From contig JAKMXF010000360.1 in assembly GCA_024704765.1 (NCBI GenBank), forward strand, positions 80,395 to 144,394: a DNA stretch of 64,000 nt, in the 5' to 3' direction. The position numbers were made by a program, and so were the translations under genes. Source of the stretch: Oopsacas minuta. Its lineage: Eukaryota > Animalia > Porifera. This document shows, in pieces, positions 6,867 through 63,560 of this stretch (position 1 is the stretch's first letter; the number at the start of each line of letters is the position of its first letter). Below the pieces are notes generated by a model. The model saw only the letters and a program-made list of their open reading frames with translations, searched no databases and had not been told where the DNA came from.

Positions 6867-7766
6867 TACAAAATTTCAAAGTTCACTATCGCCGTTTTTT
6901 CCTAAGATATGTTCTTGCCAAGATTGATGAATGCGACACAGCATCTGATGTTTCTAAATCAGTGAATGTACTTAGAGCAATCCAATGGGTAGCCAATGCT
7001 TGGGACATGGTTAAACCTGAAACTATCTCTAAATGTTTCATGAATGCTGGCATTTTGAGTGGTTCCATGGACGTTATTAATCGTGGACTCAACGAAAATG
7101 ATGACAGCAATGACCCATTTTAGAATCAGATCAGTATCTAATAGGACTACAGACTCTTATTGACAAGACCGTTCATGAAGGTTGTAACATAGATGAATAT
7201 ATACAATGCGAAGGGGATCTACCAGTGTGTCAAAATCTAGATTGTGATTGGGAAGACAATTTTTTGAAAGATATCGGTCAACCTGCGGAAGAAGGTGAGA
7301 TCACAGATCCTGAAAGTGACCATGATGTAGAAATTGTAGAGGATACTTCACTTGTGTTGAACACATATAAAAAGGTGATAGTGGCCCTGGAAAACGTTCA
7401 AAAGTTCTTGGAAGTGCATGGCCACGGAGCGGAGGCATCGGGGATTGCTGCCACGATAGAATCATGCGTGGAGTACAAGATCAAGGGATTGGGATTGAGC
7501 CAATCAACCCTCAGTGATTTTGTTTTTTTAGTATTTATTAGGTCGCCAGTAGTAATCGGTTATAGGAACATCACAAGTAGAGAAAAACCTATTTATAACC
7601 AATTTAGATTCCACTAGCCGATGTTCTATAACCGATAACTACTCTATTAGTATCGATATATGCTATTTTAGTTTTTGAATAATATATTATGGGTGTATAT
7701 GTGCAACCTCCGAATAGCGGCACAGAATCATTCTCCCGATGGTTGCCGCTTTGAGAGGTTTACCTG
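6867..7766 (+). mobile_element. 3' part of a pogo/Tigger (TIGD-like) transposon
   Basis: The plus frame reads HYRRFFLRYVL...AIQWVANAWDMVKPETISKCFMNAG (DDE_1 C-terminus), then an acidic tail ending QSTLSDF. The right TIR ...GCCGCTTTGAGAGGTTTACCTG is followed by TA at 7767-7768. The 5' side abuts the single N at 6866. Confidence 0.8.
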
Positions 7767-10811: not shown

Positions 10812-11263
10812 CAATATATTCTTGTAAATATGTTTATATTTCTTTATATTTTTGTGTTTTTGAAGCTTATTTGTATATTTGAAAGTTGAACTTTTATTTA
10901 CTTCTAATTTGATTAATATTGTTTATTTTCATACACAATATAGTTATAGTAATACACAGCTGTAGGAGACAGTACAGTTGGTCAGGTTTCAACCGAATTA
11001 ATACTTGGACTCCTAATAGAAATAGAATTAGTAACCGCACTAGTTGTAATCTTGCTACTGTCTTATACTACTAACAAACAAACAAACACTGTATCTAATT
11101 CTTCTGGTTATTATTACGTCATACTATTACACACAGGTTGCCAGACTTTTAATCGTTTGTACAATATACTTAATCTGTACTCACATATCTTATGATATTT
11201 GTTACAATGCTAGTCACTAAAAGAATGATATTCAGGGCTTTTCGGATTAGCTAGGGTATACAA

Positions 11264-11400
11264 CAAGCGGTTCCCAACCTTATAACCCAGTGATACCCAA
11301 TTTTAACACCCTCTCCTGTCGCCCCATGGTGTCGTCCGTGGACTCCCAAGGACCCCTAACTTTGTCATAATTGAAATGACAGAACAATTTCGTAATTTCT
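11264..11400. mobile_element. hAT-type MITE fragment
   Basis: Begins CAAGCGGTTCCCAACC, similar to the hAT terminus at 4458. No matching second TIR was found. Confidence 0.4.
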
Positions 11401-11419
11401 TAAATAAAACAAAAGTTGT

Positions 11420-12719
11420 TTACACCTTGTCAATAGAATTATAAGTATTATGTTTGTGTGTATTATCTTCTCCAGTCAGGAGTCCTACTTTAGAATTCCT
11501 CCTCTTCCTTTTAAGATAATTCTTAGGCAGACCGCTAATGATATTCCTCTCCCTTGCTTTAACTCTACATAGCATTATCATACAGCATACAGCTGATAAG
11601 ATTAGTACTACACCAATACATAAGAGGATTAGTAGAAATATCATCTGCATTGGATCTATTGGAATATAGTAGAATACGGATGTGACGTATGTAAGTCTTA
11701 TACGAATAGAGATTGTATTAAACTAATGAGCACGTTATTACGTATAACTCACTATTAAATATTCCCATTCCTCCATTAGCTATATCCAGACTATTAACCT
11801 CCGCTATAACTTCATGTAACTGGTATCTGAGAGCTGATATTGTAGGGTAGGTGTTACGTGATCCTCTGTATAACATGACGTCACTATATTTATTATATTC
11901 TGTTATGTTAATTTGTATATACACTGTGTCTATTAGTACTATTGAATTGTTAGGTGTATTATAGTTGATAGCTTCTATTAGAATACTGAATCTACCCTGA
12001 AGATACAAATAATATTAGATTTGTTGTTGTTTATGCTCTCCTTAATTAATTAAGAGTATTATTTATCAAGAAACTACTCATATTATTAGTACAGTCACCT
12101 CCTGTAATACCAAACACGGATATATAGAAATACCCGCTTATATCGAAGTGTGAATTATACAAATATATTCACACATATTTCATCTCAGTAATTATTACGG
12201 CTCCTTAGCTCCGAATTATAACAGCTGAATTGATTGTATGCTAATAGTGTATGGACAATACATTCCAACTAACATTAAAGGTATCCAGGGTGTTGTATTT
12301 AACAGGATTACTCTCTCTTCCTATTCTATCATCAAATGTAACGTTATTAACACGTGTATAAGGTTCTGTTATAACTATAGGATATACTGTATAAGGAGAG
12401 CTACAGTCTAGAGTTGTTGATGACTGTTCTAATATTACACATATCCTAAGGGCAGGATTACAATTATTGTTACAATAATCTCCATTGTATAATCTCCCTC
12501 TTGTGTTGAAGTATTTGTAGTCTATTGAGAGGTGTTTTGTAGCGATAGATGTGGTCTATAATTATATTAATAATTCGTAATATCTACTACACTGGAGTCC
12601 TCCTATTAGCAAGCTGTATTTTGAAGGAATTCCCTTGCTAACACGCGTACTTGTTGTTTATATCTCTAAATACTTACCAAATAATTAACTACAATAATAA
12701 TACACAAATAAGCAATCAT
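11420..12719 (-). CDS. Single-pass protein with a Notch-ligand N-terminal (MNNL/C2-like) domain only
   Basis: Exons 12719-12678 (MIAYLCIIIVVNYL), 12555-12274 (YKYFNTRGRLYNGDYCNNNCNPALRICV...NPVKY), 11996-11753 (GRFSILIEA...LIDTVYI...YRG...LRYQL) and 11655-11420 (TM plus basic tail ending IDKV). All splice phases are compatible. Confidence 0.7.
12092..12236. mobile_element. pogo/Tc1-like MITE family A, copy 1 (intronic)
   Basis: TA-flanked. Internal sequence (AACACGGATATATAGAAATACCCGCTTATATCGAAG) is shared with the 13153 and 24063 copies. Confidence 0.75.
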
Positions 12720-53083: not shown

Positions 53084-53198
53084 AGAACTTATTTTATACT
53101 TTTTATTGAATTAATTTATTTTTCTGCATTTTTGCTATAATTAATTGTTTTTTAATATTTGTTTATTTTATTCTTAACTTGTATTTTGATTGGCTAGC

Positions 53199-53786
53199 AT
53201 GGCTCATAGAGGTCCTTACTACAAGGTTGTGCTCCTGGGTGAGCTGGGAGTAGGAAAGAGCTCCGTGTTCCGACGTTTGAGGGACGATACCTTCGATGAG
53301 AGACAGCCCGCGACTACAGGGATAGATTCCTGCACAGCTCTGTTTAAAGTTGATAATGAAAACGTTATGCTTACAATCTGGGACACTGCTGGAGTCGAAA
53401 GGTTCCGGACCCTGACGAGGAATTATTATCGTAATGCTCATGCAGCTGTATTCCTATACAGCGTCAGTGAGGCCTCCTCTCTCCATTATCTGACTCAGTG
53501 GGTAAAGGATTGTGAGAATTTTGCTCCCAGTGCTGTCCGGATGCTGATAGGGAATAAGAGTGATCTGGATGCTGAAGTTGATTTCGCTACCGCCAAGAGT
53601 TTTGCTAATTTATATGAATTCGTGGGTGTTCATATTCTGTCAGCTAAGAAGAACTTAGGAATTCAGGAAGCATTCCAGGACCTTGCTGCCAAGCTACACG
53701 CTCCTCTCCCTCGGTCTCCTAGCATTATTCCCGCCTTGCCACAGAGCCAATCCGCCCCTGAGACAAGCAAGAAGTGTTGTAAATAG
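53199..53786 (+). CDS. Rab-like small GTPase, intronless
   Basis: GELGVGKS, WDTAGVERFRTLTRNYYR, NKSD, SAK and a C-terminal KKCCK. Confidence 0.9.
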   Translation: MAHRGPYYKVVLLGELGVGKSSVFRRLRDDTFDERQPATTGIDSCTALFKVDNENVMLTIWDTAGVERFRTLTRNYYRNAHAAVFLYSVSEASSLHYLTQWVKDCENFAPSAVRMLIGNKSDLDAEVDFATAKSFANLYEFVGVHILSAKKNLGIQEAFQDLAAKLHAPLPRSPSIIPALPQSQSAPETSKKCCK

Positions 53787-53927: not shown

Positions 53928-54487
53928 ATGGCCGAAAACAACCAATTAAATCTGGAGGATTTGACAGAAGAACAGCTGTTATTCAGACTGACACGTATGC
54001 GTCAGCTGAGATTAATCGATCAGCTGATGCAGCAACAACTGGAGGAACAGCTGGAGGAGCAGAAGAAGCAAGAAAGAATTAAAAAGAAGATTAAAGTTAT
54101 TCAAGAATTTATTGTAGTATGTTATGATGACTTATTAGATGACCTTAAATGGAGATGTCAAGAGGTATGTCTTTAGCATTGTTGTCATTATTGTTTACCA
54201 GCTGTATACAGGTATTAGCTATGGTTGATGATTACCACAAGGAATGTCAGCTCCGTAAGAGTCAGGGGGAGCCTGTAGATGAGCAGGAATTGGAGAAGAT
54301 CTGTACCGAGGATGTCGCTCAGGGACTGAAGGAAATACAGTTAGCTTTACCCGACAGAGGAGCCCTGGGTTTAGACCCCCCTGCTCCCCTCCCTCCACAG
54401 ATAGAGGCTATTACAGAGGAGGTCGCTAAGGAGCCTGTTGTATCTTCTGATACTCCCAGCAACAGGCCCTCTACTAAAACTAAATAA
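53928..54487 (+). CDS. Uncharacterised helical protein, two exons
   Basis: MAENNQLNLEDLTEEQLLFRL... is spliced (gtatgt ~54165 / ag ~54210) to VLAMVDDYHKECQ...KTK-stop. Confidence 0.65.
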
Positions 54488-54577
54488 GAATTAGATATTA
54501 CTGACTGAGAATGTAATTAATACTAATTAATCATTATATTTACTGTTATTCCCTAGCAACGATAGTAGACATTAGCT

Positions 54578-57500
54578 ATGCCATTAGTTATCGGGGATCA
54601 GCTGATCCTAGAAGAGGCGTTTGATGATACCTATGAACCTACAGAGCAGGAGGTAGCAGAGTACGCAGCTGTAATCGGGATAGACCCAAGGGGAGACGGA
54701 GATCTGATGTGGATAGCTAGAGAGGGAATAAGAGCAGCACTCCCACCTGAATGGAAGCCTTGTCAAGATACCACAGGTTAGTTCCTATTACGTCATAACT
54801 CAGTTATTTGATTGGTTTATACAGGTGATATTTACTACTTCAACTTTACAACTGGAGAGTCTAATTGGGATCATCCATGTGACGAATATTACCGGAATTT
54901 AGTAGAGACCACACGGGCCAAGAGAGTACAGGATCCTTCTTCTGCTCCCCTGTCTCTATCTGGTCTCAGAGGGTCCTTACCCCCTCTCAAGTCAATGGGA
55001 GGTATGTCAGGGAGGTCTCAGAAAGAGGACCATCTGATCGCTCAAGCTAGGGACATTCTTCAGCCGGATGAGGTTGCTAGCGATTCCAGAGAGTTTCAGA
55101 GTAAATTCCAGTTAGATACCAACATTCCAGAGCTAGGGGAAGGTAACCAGGGAGAATCTCCTTCCGAGGAGAGAGGTTCTCAAGTGGATAAAGGTATTTA
55201 TCATATTCTAGTTAATATTCCATAAGTGTATTAGTGTAACCACATAGAGAGTAGTGAGGGATCTGGTAGCAGTGAAGAATTAGATGCAATGGGAATCTCA
55301 GTTAAGTTAGATGGATTATATCCAGCTCGAATATCTCCCATCAGAGATATATCAATAGGGAGTGATAACGACATGCCCTTACACCCAGGTGAGTATAGGA
55401 TTACTTACTGAGTTTATGATATATCATAATTTCACACCTTTAGTGTCTAAAAAGTTACCGGTTAGTAAAATACCGGTCTCCTCTCAGACTAAGAGAAGTC
55501 CTACTGTATCTCCTGAAGCTGTTAGAGTACCAGAATTAATTGGTAGCTTAGTTCCGGTTAGAGAAATGGAACTGGCAAGAATTAGACAGCAACAGGAATT
55601 AGATTTCCAAGTTACTAAAAAGAAAATTCAAGAAAACTTTACAAAAGAATTGGAATTAGAGACAGACAAACTAACAGCTGATTCAGCCAATAGAATTACA
55701 GCTTTGAAAGAGTTTGTTATACAAATAAGAAGCTGTGTTTTTAGAATTATTATTTCTATTTGTTTGTAGTGAATTGAATGAGCGGGAAAGTTACTTCCGA
55801 AAGGAGAATGAATCTAAACTAGAGGTGTTAATTACAGAGCTAAATAAGGAATTAATTGTTAAAGAAAATTCTATAAATGAAGAGAACAGAATTAAGATTG
55901 ATAATCTGAGAGCTGAGCTAGAGAAGGATTCTGATTTGTTGAGACTGGAGCATCAAGATAAGTTGACAGGTCTATCTGACACCTTGTCTAGACAGAGAGA
56001 CACTTTAGAGAATAATCTGAGAGAGGAACAGATACAGCTGTTGGAGCAGATAGAGCAGAGTAGCAGAGATAGGAAATTGGAATTCAATAGGAACCATAAA
56101 AAGGAATTAAACGATTTGTGTGATAAATTAGAATTTGAGAGAGAAGAGAGAGAGTTTGAATTGAAAGAGAAAATATCAGCTGATCTCAAACAGCTGAGAA
56201 TACAGCTGGAAGATGAAAATGATGAAGAATTAAAACAGATTAAATCCAAATTTGAAGTTTGTTATTCTATTAATAGATTTTAACTTAATAATATTTGTAT
56301 GAATATTTTTAGGAAGAAAAGATAATTTTGAGAGAAGATTTTGATTCTTATAAACAAGAACTGGAAACACATAGAGCTGAGTATGAGCATGAGAAGGATA
56401 TGATTGGCCAGTCAGAAGTATACAAACAGGAAATAGAGACTGACAGGGAAGAGTTAATTAAAGACAGAAAACTAGTGATTACTGATAGAGAGCAGTTAGA
56501 CAGAGAGATGGAATCTGTAATAATGGATAGGCAACAACTAGAAAGAGATAGAGATCAAGTAATTACGGTTAGGCAAGGAGTAGTTAAGGATAGAGAGGAA
56601 GTAGCTAGAGAGAGGCAGGAAGTAGCTAGAGAGAGACAGAAAGTAGATAGAGAGAAACAGGAAGTGTATAGGGAGAGACTGGAAGTAGATAAAGATAGAG
56701 AGGAAGTAGCTAGAGAGAGACAGGAAGTAGATATTGCTAGAGGTCTTGTAGAGGCTGATAGGTTACAAATAGTGAGTGATTTAGAACAGATACAGATTGA
56801 TAAAGAACGAATAACTAAAGATAAGTTAGAGATAGCTAATGAGTTACAACAAATAGTGAGTGATAGAGAGTCTATAAACCGTGATAGACAACACATAGAT
56901 GCTGATATGGAACATGTAGTGAGAGATAGGCAACAGATAGATGCTGATATGGAACATGTAGTGAGAGATAGGCAACAGATAGATGCTGATATGGAACATG
57001 TAGTGAGAGATAGGCAACAGATAGATGCTGATAGAGAACAAGTAGTGAGAGATAGGCAACAGATAGATGCTGATAGAGAACAAGTAGTGAGAGATAGGCA
57101 ACAGATAGATGCTGATAGAGAACAAGTAGTGAGAGATAAGGATAGTTTAGAAGCTGAGAATTTGGAATTAGAATCTGTTAGAGAACAGAAGGAGATGGAA
57201 AAGCGGAATTTGTCAAATCTTATAACAGAAACTGAAACTCAGAAGCAAGAATTGGAGACAAGTATAACAGAAGTAGAAATTTTGAAACAAGAATTTGAGG
57301 TTTTGCTGTCTGAAAATGTAGAAAACAAAATAACAATAGGAGAGAGACAAGCTAGAGATTTAAGGGATATTGATATGAGATATGAAGAGTATGTATATGA
57401 TAATTTAATTACTTTATTAGCTTATATTTATGTATTTTTTCAGAGCTTTAACTGTTCGAAAGAATGAATTAATTAACAAAGAGAATGAAGAAATAGAAAC

Positions 57501-58997
57501 ATTCCAACAACAGCTAGCTGTTACTAGGATAGACCGAGAGCAATTACTCCAACAACAAAAAGAGGAGATTGAAATGTTGAAACAGAATGTGGAAATACAA
57601 AGAGAAGAGATCACTAATCAGTTGAAACCGCTGCATAGGTAATCAGCTGTTATTAATAATATCAAATTATTGATTGTGTAATTTGTTAGAGAACTGAGTC
57701 AGCTGACTCAAAGGAAGGAAGATCTGTCAAGAGAGGTGTTAGAATTAGGCGCAAAAGAGAGAGAATGTAGCGAGTTGAATAATCAGCTGATTACAGACAC
57801 ACAAGTTCTGCGGTCAAATGTGAGTATTTATTAGAGGTGTGACAACATGATTAATCATATATTGTAGGTTAATGAATTGCAGGAGAGAAGAGATATTCTG
57901 GAGCAGCAATCAACTGATTACCAGCTGGAGCAAGATAGAGTTAGAGCTAAGGCTTTAGATGTAGCTACTCAAACTGAAGTCATCACTTCACCTGATACTA
58001 CCATAGATACCTCACATATCTATTCACCGGATAGGTATCTAAGACAGAGCCCTGCTCTATCGCTGACAGACTCCCTCGCCTCTCTAGCTCTCTCCCGCGT
58101 TAGTCTAGACAGAGAATTCCTACCACCTGATCCTGTAACTATAGAGTTAGATGATATCACTAGATCTGTTTCTATGGAAGGTCTGTCTAATCATGACCTG
58201 TCTCTATCTGAGCAAATAGCTATGGTAATGTATATACATTCTTATTATACGTTCTAGTAACTAAGGGAATTTATGTGTAGGAGGAGGCCTCGCTTCAGGG
58301 AGCTAAAGGATTCCTAGAGAAACATAAAATAGAGTTACAGGACAGGAAGGCAAGGCTTAAATCCGCTAGAGAGGAATGGAAGAGTGATAGGCATTCCATT
58401 ATGGATGCTCCGTCTCCAGGGAGGATGAGCTTGCTCCAGGACGTTAAGACGGAGCTCCAACTGGAGGCTAGTCAGCTGAACAATGATATTAGGGGACTGT
58501 CCAGTGGACAGAAACTCGTATCCCGTAAGGAGAAAGTCCTCAGAGAGTACTCGTTACCTATCAGTCCTCTGTCCTGCTCTCGGGACACAGGACGTGTTAT
58601 GGACTCTCTGATGAGTCTTAACAGACAGCTAGACGGTGTACTCTCCTCTCTCAGATCCTCATCACCTCTCCTCTCCACCAGGTCAGTTAAATATTCATAT
58701 TTTCAGATATCAGTTCATTCATCCTCTAACAGGATCAGTCCAGGGAGTATCACCTCTCTCCCGGATCTTGTACCAGCCCGTCAGGAGAGGATAGACGCTC
58801 AGCTAAGAGACAAATGGCTAGGTTATATCAAGAAGCCACAATATGTAACTAACACTTCTACTGGTTCCAGTGTTCGTGACCAGCTGAGGATGCAGTGTGA
58901 TTGGCTTAAAAGATTTCCTCAGGAGTCTAGCTATAGTTCCTATTTATCTCAGAAAGAACCAATTTCTAAATTTAGCTACAAACATAATTATTTCTAA
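54578..58997 (+). CDS. CEP164: Centrosomal protein CEP164
   Basis: [18 protein letters not shown]...LMWIAREG...[36 protein letters not shown] (WW domain), followed by a long coiled coil. Confidence 0.93.
56883..57134 (+). repeat. Coding tandem repeat, 6 x 42 bp (14 aa) in CEP164
   Basis: Three DRQ(H/Q)[10 protein letters not shown] units followed by three [14 protein letters not shown] units. Confidence 0.95.
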
Positions 58998-59159
58998 ATT
59001 TAGAACAAACTATATTATGCACTAATACAGCCTATTTCACTTGATACATTCCTATAAGGCTGCGTTGCTAAGTAACGGAGGGAATGGAATTTAGTGTTAG
59101 TGTTATGTACCAGCTCTATTTGTAAGGTGTTATAACTTAATTAATGTTTGTAAAAGCTA

Positions 59160-62018
59160 ATGAGTGAGGATGAGAGAGCTGTATTCAAAGCATTTCTGTT
59201 CTCCGGGGATACGGAATGTAGAGCTTGGAATTTGCTATACCGTGTGCTAATACAACTAAAGTTTGTGTCAGATGGAACCTCAGTAAAATTGCTTGGAATT
59301 CACGAACAGAAAGAATCTTTCGTTTATGAAATTTCTCTTCAATCAAACATCTCAGTTAAAATGAAATCTGATTTTGTTCAGTGGCACATAAAAATAACTG
59401 ATTGTATAGAATCAATGGGAGCCAAATTCTTGACACCTTCTGAAGCTGACAAATTCCTTTCCTGTTTTCAACAGCTCTTAGAAGATGTAAAATCAAGACA
59501 ACAAGTCAGTTTACATTCCTTTCTTTCTCGTGGTAGCTATGTTATTGAATTATTCTTTTTTTAGAAACTATCTCGCCTGAGCTTAGACCTACAGCCTGTC
59601 ATAATTCCTCACCCCTCGGTCCGTCCATCCTCTGCTCTACAGCTGACAGTTTCTCTCCCTGACGGACGGAAAAGAACTGAATCTGTCTCTCACTCTACTA
59701 GACTCAGAGAAGTTCTGGCTAAAGTCTGCCAGGCAGAGCGTTTGTCGCTTAAATATCATTACCTCAAACCTGAGAAACTCTGCTTAGATCCAGAACCAGC
59801 TCCTCTGGATATGGAACTAACTGTAGGAGAGGTTAAAGTGTCAAAACTCCAGCTGGTGGACAGACGGGCAGAGAGGGACAATAATAACGCCGGTAAGATA
59901 TCATTTCTGAGGGCCTGGAGCTCTGGAGATTCAGATAAGGATAGCAGTAAACAGGTTACTTTACTGAATGGAACTTTCAGGAAGTTTGATCAACATGTTA
60001 TATCAGGTACTAATCAATCAGCTGATTATATATAGGTGTTAGTTTCATATATTATCTCTTTAGATATCGCTAGTGAAGGAGTTGAATTCGTGTCTCCTAC
60101 TAGAGTTATTTCTGAGAGACTAGAGGGAGCGGAGAGAGTAGAGAGTCCTATTGATAGCGTTGACGAAGCAGAACTGGCAGCTCCTTTCAGAGATGTTTTC
60201 CGGCAAGAATTACCTAAGTTTGTTACTAGTTTAACCTCTTTAATACTAAAACGGTTAATGAATAGTTCTGGAAATTTATTATTTTGTATTAGACGCAGCA
60301 GCTCACTGAGGTCTCGTGCTCAAGAAGAAACTTCTCTAGACAAAGCTCTCTTTTCGGATAATCTCTGCTCTTCTATCGACACCGCTAGACCCAGCTCTCT
60401 ATCAAGAATAACATTCTCTGAGTCTGATATTAGAGAAGCATTCAACCACTCAGAACACAAGCCTGGTACTCCTAACAGACGTAGAGCACCTAAACCTCCA
60501 AAATCCCTTCCTAAGGAATCGGAGAATATATTGGATTTCCTTCAAGAGAAGAGTAAGAAATCCTCACAGGTTCCTTTGTTTAAAGTTCCTCAAGAGATCT
60601 CCAGTCAGTTACAGGATGAATTTAGTCAGAAGCTAGTAGCTATCCGAGCAAGATCTCCTGACCTGACAACACAACTGAACAATAAGAATGCTCCCTTGGA
60701 GCCTCTGGCCTCTTCCACACCGGACAAGAAAGCGATCAAACCGAGGCCTCAAATAGCTCCTAAGCCTGCTCATTTAGTAGTGTCTAGAATTAAGCAGACG
60801 GAGCCCTCATTCCCTCTGTACCCCTCTACTCCTCCGACAGAGGCTCTGCTCACCAGTGATCACGGTACCTGTCGTGGAGTTTCAGGTCGTGTCGCTATCT
60901 GGCGCGCTAAGGAAATTGGTCAGACCGATCAACAACAACAACAGCTTGTGTTCCGCCCTCAGACATCCGGCCTATTCGAATCAGAACCACTAGTATTCAA
61001 TTTACCAGGACCTCCCCCAGACTCTCCTCCTCTCACTCCACCCCCTATGAGGTTCCCGACGGATTGTGACACATTATCCGAGCCAATCGAATTGGAGAGT
61101 TTGATTCCTCCTCCATTAGACGAGTTCTACCAATCAGATCTGTTACCTAGTTCCCCGCCTTCTCCTCATATTCTAAAAATAGAATCTGAATTGATTTCTA
61201 CTGACATAGACGATGACGTCATTACTGATATTGACCAATTGAATGCTAGCGATAATATTCCTGAGGATATGATAGTGTTACCGCCTCCTCACTTCTCAAC
61301 TTTATCAGAGAATGAATTCGTAGATTATCCGCCACCATCCCCGCTGAGACTGTTCCTCAGTCCCAGCTACGGATTAACCGAGAGTATAGATCCTCCCCCA
61401 CCCACTCATCAATCAAATTATCGAGTTGAACCTCTAGAAACTAATGATATAGTTACCGATTTGGATGATAAGAGTGCAATTCCTGATTTGAACACACAAC
61501 GTGTAGCTGAGCTATTGACCGCTGCAGCTAACTCTCTGAATAAAGAAGGGACTGATAGACCGACAGAAGCATCAGAGCTTGTTAGAGCAGCATTAGATTT
61601 AATCGCCAGAGACTCAAAGGTAAACAATTTGTATTTACATTTATTGTGTTTATTTACTTGTTTACTTGTGTAGAAGAGTGTCCCAGAATTTCTGATCAGA
61701 TCTTCCTACCATAAGTCAGACGAAGAGACAGAAGCGCTGCAGAGAGAAGCTCCAGACTTTACAAAGTTCGGACAAGACTTCAAGGCCTGTATGAAAGATA
61801 TTATCTCTGATAATCCAACTGTGTTAAGGCCATCCTCTGATGACGTATTCCGAGCTAGGGAGGTTGTAGAGACCGATTCAAACGAGTCACAGGGCTCTGA
61901 AGCAGGAGATGTTGTTAGTGCAGTAGCTAAAGCAATGAAAGAGAGAAGACAACAAATAGAAAACACGATTTCTCTCTCTGATCCCTCTCATTCATCAATC
62001 CTTGATGATTGGAAATAG
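59160..62018 (+). CDS. Putative WASP-like actin nucleation-promoting factor: EVH1, RBD/ubiquitin-like, proline-rich, WH2-like/C/A
   Basis: Exons 59160-59504, 59565-60006, 60064-61619 (a further short intron near 60220-60290 is possible) and 61674-62018. EVH1 signature FVQW...MGAKFLTPSEADKF; LTVSLPDGRKRTESVSHSTRLREVLAKVC; RRRAPKPP; polyPro tracts; C-terminal DVVSAVAKAMKERRQQI...DDWK. Confidence 0.7.
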
Positions 62019-62599
62019 TTTATTTGCATTATATCCCCCTATTGTATCTATTTTCGCTTATGCTCACATTTGATACATATATTATACAAGCAACCAAATC
62101 TGCTTTCATAAATTACTAGCAAAGTTTTCATGAGATTACAATTGGGTGAATAGAATTGTGAAGAAAAATTATACCAACATAGTTTGCAGTATCTTTGCAA
62201 ATCCGACAAAATATAATAGAATTATAGGACGAAGTTCTAACAAATTCGTTGGTATTCTCATAATTACAAGAGAATGTTCGTATAATCATTAAAATATTTT
62301 CATATCACCCTAGCTATATTTGTTTTAGTCGAGAAGATGAGCGGCAGCCCTCCTGTTTCAAAGAAAGAATAGCGGTTGTTCTACGTTGTCAGTAATTCCT
62401 GTACTTGTTATACTAGCTGTACGAATAATACTTCCTGGAAGTCTCTAATGATCAAAGCGGAAGCCAGCTGAAGTTCCTTTAAGCGGACGAAATGTAGCTG
62501 GAAGACACTGAAATAGAGAGACGAGCATAGACAGGAAGTTTACTCTATCTCATAGACAGCTGATAGAATCGCTTGAGAGGAGAACCTGAGCATTAGAGT

Positions 62600-62936: not shown

Positions 62937-63285
62937 GTCAGAACTACGAAACTAATAATTTTAAAAAGATTGACCAAATATTCAATTAAATGTTATTATT
63001 CTTTACGGATTATATCTTATAAATCTGTATTAATTAAACAACAAAGTACTTTGTTTGAGATGAAATTGGAACAATGAATCGTGAATTTGTTAACTGAAGA
63101 TTACATAAATATGATCAAGTTGCACCAGAGATTATAATAATCATAAGGAAATGTGATCAACTACTATTGTGAAGAATAATAGCAAAATATACGAAAGAAA
63201 TAAAGGGACAAGAGACCGTCAATACGTAACGTAATGTACTAAGGGGTTGGACAGTCCATATAGATATGTGTTCTAATACTTAATA

Positions 63286-63560
63286 GGAATGCTCTTATAA
63301 TTCTAAGAAATGCCCCTATAAGGAAATGCTCTCATAATTATAAGAAATGCCCCTATAAGGAATGCTCTTATAATATAAGAAAATTATAAGAAATGCCCCT
63401 ATAAGGAATGCTCTTATAATTATAAGAAATGCCCCTATAAGGAATGCTCTTATAATTATAAGAAATGCCCGTATAAGGAATGCTATTATAATTATAAGAA
63501 ATGCCCCTATAAGGAATGCTATTATAATTATAAGAAATGCCCCTATAAGGAATGCTATTA
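63286..63560. repeat. 36-bp minisatellite, about 7 copies
   Basis: Unit TTATAAGAAATGCCCCTATAAGGAATGCTCTTATAA with point variants and one partial unit. Confidence 0.95.

Follow-up and report, generated by a model that had tools for sequence, protein, structure and literature searches.

LOD99_9416 of the sponge Oopsacas minuta, a candidate WASP-family-like protein with an EVH1 domain and a ubiquitin-like domain

The stretch of DNA analyzed here (the window) comprises 64,000 nucleotides (nt) of the glass sponge Oopsacas minuta (NCBI GenBank assembly GCA_024704765.1, contig JAKMXF010000360.1, positions 80,395 to 144,394 of the forward strand). At window positions 59160-62018, on the + strand, lies the five-exon gene LOD99_9416, with its ATG at 59160 and its stop codon at 62016-62018. 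Its product of 870 amino acids (aa) combines an EVH1 domain, a ubiquitin-like domain, short linear motifs, a proline-rich region and a tail that resembles a VCA module. An earlier note on this DNA, made from the letters alone, had proposed a new WASP-family activator of Arp2/3 with an EVH1 domain and a Ras-binding-type module in place of CRIB. In our assessment the chances are evenly balanced that LOD99_9416 is a new WASP-family-like nucleation-promoting factor, i.e. a predicted Arp2/3 activator, restricted to a sponge lineage. The exons, introns and predicted protein features are as follows (all borders GT..AG).

59160-59504, + strand: exon 1, aa 1-115; predicted EVH1/RanBD-type PH-like domain, seven strands and a C-terminal helix running into exon 2 to ~aa 118
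59505-59564, + strand: intron 1, 60 nt, GT..AG
59565-60006, + strand: exon 2
59634-59873, + strand, within exon 2: predicted ubiquitin-like (beta-grasp) domain, aa ~139-218 (weak Pfam matches and fold model)
60007-60063, + strand: intron 2, 57 nt
60064-60217, + strand: exon 3
60218-60292, + strand: intron 3, 75 nt
60293-61619, + strand: exon 4
60477-60500, + strand: KRAP-type motif RRRAPKPP, aa 376-383, candidate ligand of syndapin/PACSIN SH3 domains (conservation and literature consensus)
60792-61451, + strand: proline-rich region, aa 481-700, 17.7% Pro (three-species alignment and conservation in the divergent orthologue L007)
61500-61616, + strand: probable helix-loop-helix, aa 717-755 (conserved in the three-species alignment and L007)
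61620-61673, + strand: intron 4, 54 nt
61674-62018, + strand: exon 5
61788-61835, + strand: WH2-like (V) motif C-M-x-D-I-[KRI]-x6-L-[RK]-[PAS]-[STA], aa 795-810 (conservation, loosened pattern)
61911-61958, + strand: C-domain-like amphipathic helix, aa 836-851, V-x3-V-x3-M, RR, I/L (published C pattern)
61959-62018, + strand: A-like tail, aa 852-870, Ser/Thr-rich, ending in [DE][DE]W, one further residue and the stop codon (conservation)

The translation of the spliced coding sequence equals, residue for residue, the database protein P0001, which is named 'hypothetical protein LOD99_9416 [Oopsacas minuta]' at NCBI and 'WH1 domain-containing protein' in UniRef and was the sole protein returned by a search with the large exon. 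All peptides quoted in the earlier note are found in this one gene, on the + strand and at the coordinates given there; the five-exon model is supplied here. Searched with phmmer against 1.84 billion representative proteins, the full-length protein had 12 matches, all short exon-sized fragments, on contigs that hold complete, collinear orthologous genes. These orthologous loci (L001/L002, L003, L004/L005, L006 and L007) stem from five ENA assemblies; their products are 39-80% identical to LOD99_9416, and the upstream neighbours are retained. The alignments of the EVH1 domain and of the tail, used as search profiles, retrieved further orthologues and nothing else. The routes to known families (Pfam on the exons and the whole protein, PDB single-sequence and profile searches) gave just orthologues or noise, and a sequence link to WASP, Ena/VASP, Homer, SPRED or Cobl appeared in none of the searches run. 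The suspicion that the architecture belongs to no described family is thus borne out by the phmmer and profile searches. The genome paper of O. minuta makes no mention of WASP, Arp2 or WH1, and the WASP-family survey of Kollmar et al. 2012 (PMC3298513) makes none of sponges, ubiquitin-like or Ras-binding domains. The architecture of LOD99_9416 is real, expressed and under selection.

The locus is present in four public runs, all of one sample. One of them, X4, has the profile of RNA, with high depth on the exons and a drop in the introns and past ~62063. X4 RNA contigs contain the joints 59504>59565 (intron 1, which has the same position in L001 and L003) and 60006>60064 (intron 2) directly, while loose ends link 60217>60293 and 61619>61674. 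The end of exon 3 is found in the loose end before 60293, where depth also dips, and the loose end behind 61619 continues with the initial 9 bases of exon 5. Joints or loose ends are therefore available for all four introns and chain the five exons in one transcript, which answers the question, raised with the original proposal, whether the exons belong together. Intron 3 keeps the frame and contains no stop codon, so that the raw sequence forms one long open frame across it; it is spliced out in P0001, and the orthologues have an intron at the equivalent place. The coding extension of exon 2 to 60006 is kept in the orthologues (QVTLLNGTF motif), and a stop codon lies three codons 5' of the ATG. 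The runs share their sample with the assembly and therefore do not count as independent biological replication. The gene model is real and expressed.

Several side observations concern the transcript and its flanks. In three species the stop codon of the upstream gene lies 110-160 nt before the ATG of the gene studied here (window 58997-59160, L001 ~6954-7110, L003 7236-7346). One RNA contig (58946-59184) spans the 160-nt gap at about one tenth of the flanking depth, which could reflect overlapping untranslated regions, read-through or polycistronic transcription. Within 4 kb (58534-62359), runs X2-X4 show some two dozen single-base differences from the window, and 60210 T>A is present in DNA-like and RNA-like contigs alike; these differences fit allelic variation within the population sampled rather than RNA editing. 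Short introns that are missing from the Oopsacas gene occur in L001 (7847-7895 and 9017-9067) and L003 (9083-9136), one past the ubiquitin-like domain (L001) and one that separates the RV.IW motif from QQLVF (L001 and L003), which points to intron loss or gain inside the lineage.

For the N-terminal domain, AlphaFold2 with the orthologue alignment predicts seven strands and a long C-terminal helix over residues 5-118, at a predicted local distance difference test score (pLDDT) of 74-86. Foldseek searches against the PDB gave a probability of 1.0 and target-normalised template modelling scores (TM) of 0.74-0.82 to the EVH1 domains of SPRED1, Mena and EVL and the RanBD of RanBP3, and VIA-align gave Z scores of 14-15 to EVL, Homer2/3, SPRED, Mena and RanBP3. 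Among the Swiss-Prot models SPRED1 ranks first, followed by a set that matches that from the PDB, plus yeast Las17 at rank 15. The Pfam WH1 match is weak (E 0.053, in two of four orthologues). On these models, the EVH1/RanBD-type fold that had been proposed from sequence patterns can be regarded as established. An assignment to one EVH1 subfamily from structure was dropped, as SPRED, Ena/VASP, Homer, RanBD and Dcp1 score alike; the top sequence identity among the structural matches is that to the SPRED1 EVH1 (19-22%). RAW occupies positions 21-23 and FVQW positions 72-75. In terms of EVH1 alignments, the conserved Trp of strand 2 and F-x-Q-W are presumably common to Ena/VASP and this domain, and the invariant Trp23 and D-F-V-Q-W are presumably closer to Ena/VASP, Homer and SPRED than to WASP WH1.

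The second domain was earlier described as a Ras-binding-type module. Its best Pfam match is indeed the Raf-like Ras-binding domain (RBD, PF02196), seen in four of five orthologues and spanning profile positions 2-43 of 69, but with E 0.0012 and 19 bits it stays below the 25.7-bit cut-off. Further weak matches are to FERM_N, RA_2, UBX, TUG-UBL1 and SNX F1, all ubiquitin-like families. The AlphaFold2 model is of low confidence (pLDDT 45), and its top 50 Foldseek matches in the PDB, like its Atlas matches, are all ubiquitin-like (SUMO, ubiquitin, PI3K RBD, talin/FERM F0-F1, RA-like). We accept a beta-grasp, ubiquitin-like fold as the predicted structure; at this pLDDT, a choice between RBD, RA, Cobl and plain ubiquitin-like from the model was dropped. 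Ras binding is one possibility that the profile match suggests, and GTPase control through this domain would be speculative. Pfam Cobl (PF09469) was reported for none of the orthologues, and the Cobl-like 1 cluster is a weak structural neighbour (TM 0.33).

On the + strand at window 53190-53786 lies a gene for a small GTPase of the Rab family (Pfam Ras, E 3e-40; nearest solved relatives Rab1 and Rab43), and its position relative to the LOD99_9416 gene is conserved in L003, L004/L005 and L006. As a partner of the possible RBD it was rejected, being neither Ras nor Rap, and the linkage is taken as coincidence.

The part of the protein between the second domain and the tail is marked by short conserved islands. 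The KRAP-type motif is invariant as TP[NS]RRRAPKPP in four aligned orthologues and in the most divergent one, L007. The consensus +KRxAPxPP binds the SH3 domain of syndapin/PACSIN in Cobl-like, ankycorbin and Ankrd24. The earlier assignment to the SH3-binding motif of Cobl holds as regards the motif type but not its specificity: the motif occurs in unrelated proteins and therefore signals an SH3 ligand, not Cobl ancestry, and Cobl homology on the basis of this motif was rejected. Other invariant islands are [KR]RSSSLR, LSR[IV]TFSESDIRE, QVPLFKV, PLASSTPDK, FPLYPSTPP and IVLPPPHF, the last of which fits PPxxF, whereas D[FY]PPPSPLR is conserved in the closer orthologues and altered in L007. The polyproline tracts reported earlier number six (PPP(P), between aa 554 and 684) and include LPPPHF at 643-648 and YPPPSP at 659-664. 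The helix-loop-helix that follows has no Pfam family match. The absence of CRIB is upheld by a Pfam PBD search and a CRIB regular expression, both empty over the whole protein; because it has no CRIB, LOD99_9416 is not a WASP/N-WASP orthologue. A CRIB-like F-x-H-x-x-H in SDIREAFNHSEH (aa ~364-369) was rejected as a chance occurrence, since the His is missing in the orthologues.

According to Kollmar et al. 2012 (PMC3298513), the WASP family is characterized by a VCA module that follows a proline-rich region, with explicit C and WH2 patterns and an acidic C-terminus that has a Trp at or near its end; the C domain consists of three large hydrophobic residues at three-residue spacing, a doublet or triplet of R/K and a closing hydrophobic residue. 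LOD99_9416 does have a proline-rich region ahead of its C-terminal module, though a weaker one than the typical WASP poly-proline. Both the C helix and the terminal Trp that had been recognized earlier agree with these patterns. The only C-pattern match in the protein is aa 836-851, it is held in all six orthologues, with V, A, A, M and RR unchanged among them. The Trp of DDWK (867-870), 18 residues past the C helix, is invariant in the six orthologues and stands one residue before the end each time. The suggested WH2 motif finds partial support, as the strict published regular expression gives no match and its loosened form gives one, at 795-810; about 8 of 10 pattern positions are satisfied in most orthologues, and A34, C35, M36, D38, I39 and L47 of alignment A8 are invariant in all six. 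In the last exon, invariance is concentrated at three sites, namely the V-like A-C-M-x-D-I...L, the C segment V..A.A..M..RR...E.T and the Trp. The linker between V and C is unconserved and varies from 12 to about 30 residues across the orthologues. Invariant clusters joined by a free linker are the pattern expected of a VCA module. Judged by sequence patterns, the C domain and terminal Trp of the WASP family appear to be present, and the WH2 motif and acidity appear to be present in part.

The A-like segment is weakly acidic, as the earlier note had remarked, and its conserved Ser/Thr positions stand upstream of acidic residues. Phosphorylation of the A regions of WASP and WAVE by CK2 increases their affinity for Arp2/3. 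By analogy, a phospho-dependent A region in LOD99_9416 is plausible.

The sequence around the gene is rich in repeats. The large upstream gene (54100-58997, + strand), which has a weak WW-domain match at 54812-55222, contains in-frame tandem copies of 21/42 nt that are up to 97% identical (56571-56733 and 56883-57138). The sequence that holds them is purine-rich and strongly GC-skewed, and the repeat region is present but divergent at the orthologous loci. A 28-nt direct repeat of 2.1 copies (58962-59025) runs across the stop codon of this upstream gene into the start of its 3' flank. Downstream of LOD99_9416 lies an AT-rich tandem array (63285-63560) with nested periods of 36, 82 and 119 nt and up to 97% matches. 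In L004, 3' of the orthologue, regular open reading frames of 32 codons recur every 174 nt (10812-12387), which indicates a long tandem repeat.

Taken together, the predicted product is a modular, mostly disordered cytoskeletal regulator laid out as EVH1 domain, ubiquitin-like domain, linear motifs (a basic [KR]RSSSLR site and the KRAP-type SH3 ligand), proline-rich region, short helical segment and V-C-A-like tail. It would most likely act as a class-I nucleation-promoting factor. The EVH1 domain, the ubiquitin-like domain and the KRAP and proline motifs would set the place and timing of its activity, by binding proline ligands, by recruiting SH3/F-BAR proteins and possibly by way of a small GTPase; intramolecular binding of the EVH1 domain to the protein's own LPPPHF and [FY]PPPSP sites may also occur. 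The weakly acidic, Ser/Thr-rich A segment may require phosphorylation for full affinity.

With the WASP family (WASP/N-WASP, WAVE, WASH, WHAMM/JMY, WAML and WAWH; PMC3298513) LOD99_9416 shares the order of a family-specific N-terminal module, a proline-rich region, a WH2-like motif, a C helix and a near-terminal Trp, and with WASP itself an N-terminus of EVH1/WH1 fold. It differs in having a ubiquitin-like domain after the EVH1 domain instead of a basic-CRIB/GBD segment, in failing the strict WH2 pattern, in its Ser/Thr-rich, weakly acidic A segment, in the lack of detectable sequence homology to any subfamily, and in being known solely from Oopsacas and a few collinear assemblies. A C pattern and an acidic-Trp end in the right geometry arise in ~1e-5 of composition-preserving shuffles, or roughly 0.2 chance cases per proteome of 16,413 proteins, in a test that was devised post hoc. 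By language-model features, the nearest neighbours of residues 770-870, and also of the shorter segment 822-870, are C-terminal clusters of WH2/VCA type (WHAMM, fungal WH2 fragments, Cobl, SCAR3), at Atlas scores of 0.81-0.82 that fall below the level of evidence and serve as a lead only.

Several results weigh against an Arp2/3 activator, besides the post hoc nature of the shuffle test and the low Atlas scores. No significant match to a VCA module, a WH2 motif or a WASP-family protein was found with Pfam, with the PDB sequences (profile search included) or among the 1.84 billion representatives. The EVH1 domain is equally like those of SPRED, Ena/VASP and Homer and the RanBD, and WASP WH1 structures are not among its top matches. 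The proline tracts are short (3-4 Pro). In the WH2-like motif, which departs from the strict pattern, Cys stands at the position of the first hydrophobic residue and L-R-[PAS]-[ST] in place of LKKV, and the last 20 residues hold just 4 acidic residues versus 6 Ser/Thr.

The strongest alternative, which we nevertheless consider somewhat unlikely, is an actin-associated scaffold or an elongation or monomer-delivery factor of the Ena/VASP or Cobl-like type, one that does not activate Arp2/3 and whose C-terminal helix and Trp make some other contact. It would suit an EVH1 domain that best matches Ena/VASP, Homer and SPRED structures rather than WASP WH1, and also the weakness of the acidic segment and the VASP_tetra and Cobl clusters among the Atlas neighbours. 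Ena/VASP proteins have an N-terminal EVH1 fold, a central proline-rich region and a C-terminal motif of the actin-monomer-binding type in common with LOD99_9416, which differs from them by its additional ubiquitin-like domain and its ending in a C helix and Trp. Cobl-like/Cordon-bleu proteins, of which Cobl-like is placed in bilaterians by the literature, are echoed by the ubiquitin-like domain towards the N-terminus, the KRAP-type syndapin-SH3 motif and the single WH2-like motif near the C-terminus, but they have neither EVH1 nor CA. Pfam does not match Cobl, VASP_tetra or WH2 in LOD99_9416, and it does not match the tetramerisation coiled coil of EVH2 (PF08776) in aa 740-870, nor is there a long coiled coil at the end. 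KRAP motifs occur in unrelated proteins as well, and the geometry of the C pattern and terminal Trp is specific and invariant.

A signalling adaptor outside actin nucleation, for instance a Ras/MAPK scaffold with a SPRED-like EVH1 and an RBD-like domain, in which the conserved C-terminal helix and Trp serve as a docking or autoinhibitory peptide, appears quite improbable. SPRED1, whose EVH1 leads both in identity and in the ranking of Swiss-Prot models, and the Raf-like RBD as best Pfam match of the second domain speak in its favour, but the RBD score is under the threshold and the structural matches fail to separate the EVH1 subfamilies. LOD99_9416 has neither the c-Kit-binding domain nor the Sprouty-related Cys-rich domain of SPRED, other signalling domains were likewise absent from the Pfam results, and this reading gives no account of a tail that is conserved and VCA-like in order and spacing. 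That the architecture is an artefact of separate genes or exons falsely joined has next to no probability: despite the short distance to the upstream gene and the thin bridging RNA contig, RNA evidence covers all four splice junctions, a stop codon precedes the ATG, and the chain of exons and the order of the protein are retained in six collinear orthologous loci.

The preferred interpretation of LOD99_9416 as a WASP-family-like nucleation-promoting factor can be extended to a more detailed one, which as a whole we rate as unlikely. Here, a separate subfamily of WASP-type Arp2/3 activators would have arisen in glass sponges, which are syncytial animals, with an EVH1 domain and a ubiquitin/RBD-like domain in place of the WH1-CRIB control module. 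A Ras/Rap-like GTPase or a ubiquitin-fold interaction would provide the input, the KRAP motif would couple F-BAR/SH3 proteins, and the A region would become acidic through phosphorylation instead of through its sequence.

Should the tail prove inactive, LOD99_9416 would still be a conserved, lineage-restricted EVH1 scaffold. A single chain that unites EVH1 and ubiquitin-like domains with KRAP and WH2-like motifs is relevant to the relation between the toolkits of Cobl and WASP type. Were the tail to activate Arp2/3, the protein would represent an undescribed subfamily of WASP-type nucleation-promoting factors, with a control module (EVH1 plus ubiquitin-like, no CRIB) that is unseen in WASP, WAVE, WASH, WHAMM/JMY, WAML, WAWH and WHIMP. 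The VCA output would then have been recombinable with new inputs inside an early-branching animal lineage, and the gene would offer a handle on actin control in the syncytial tissue of glass sponges.

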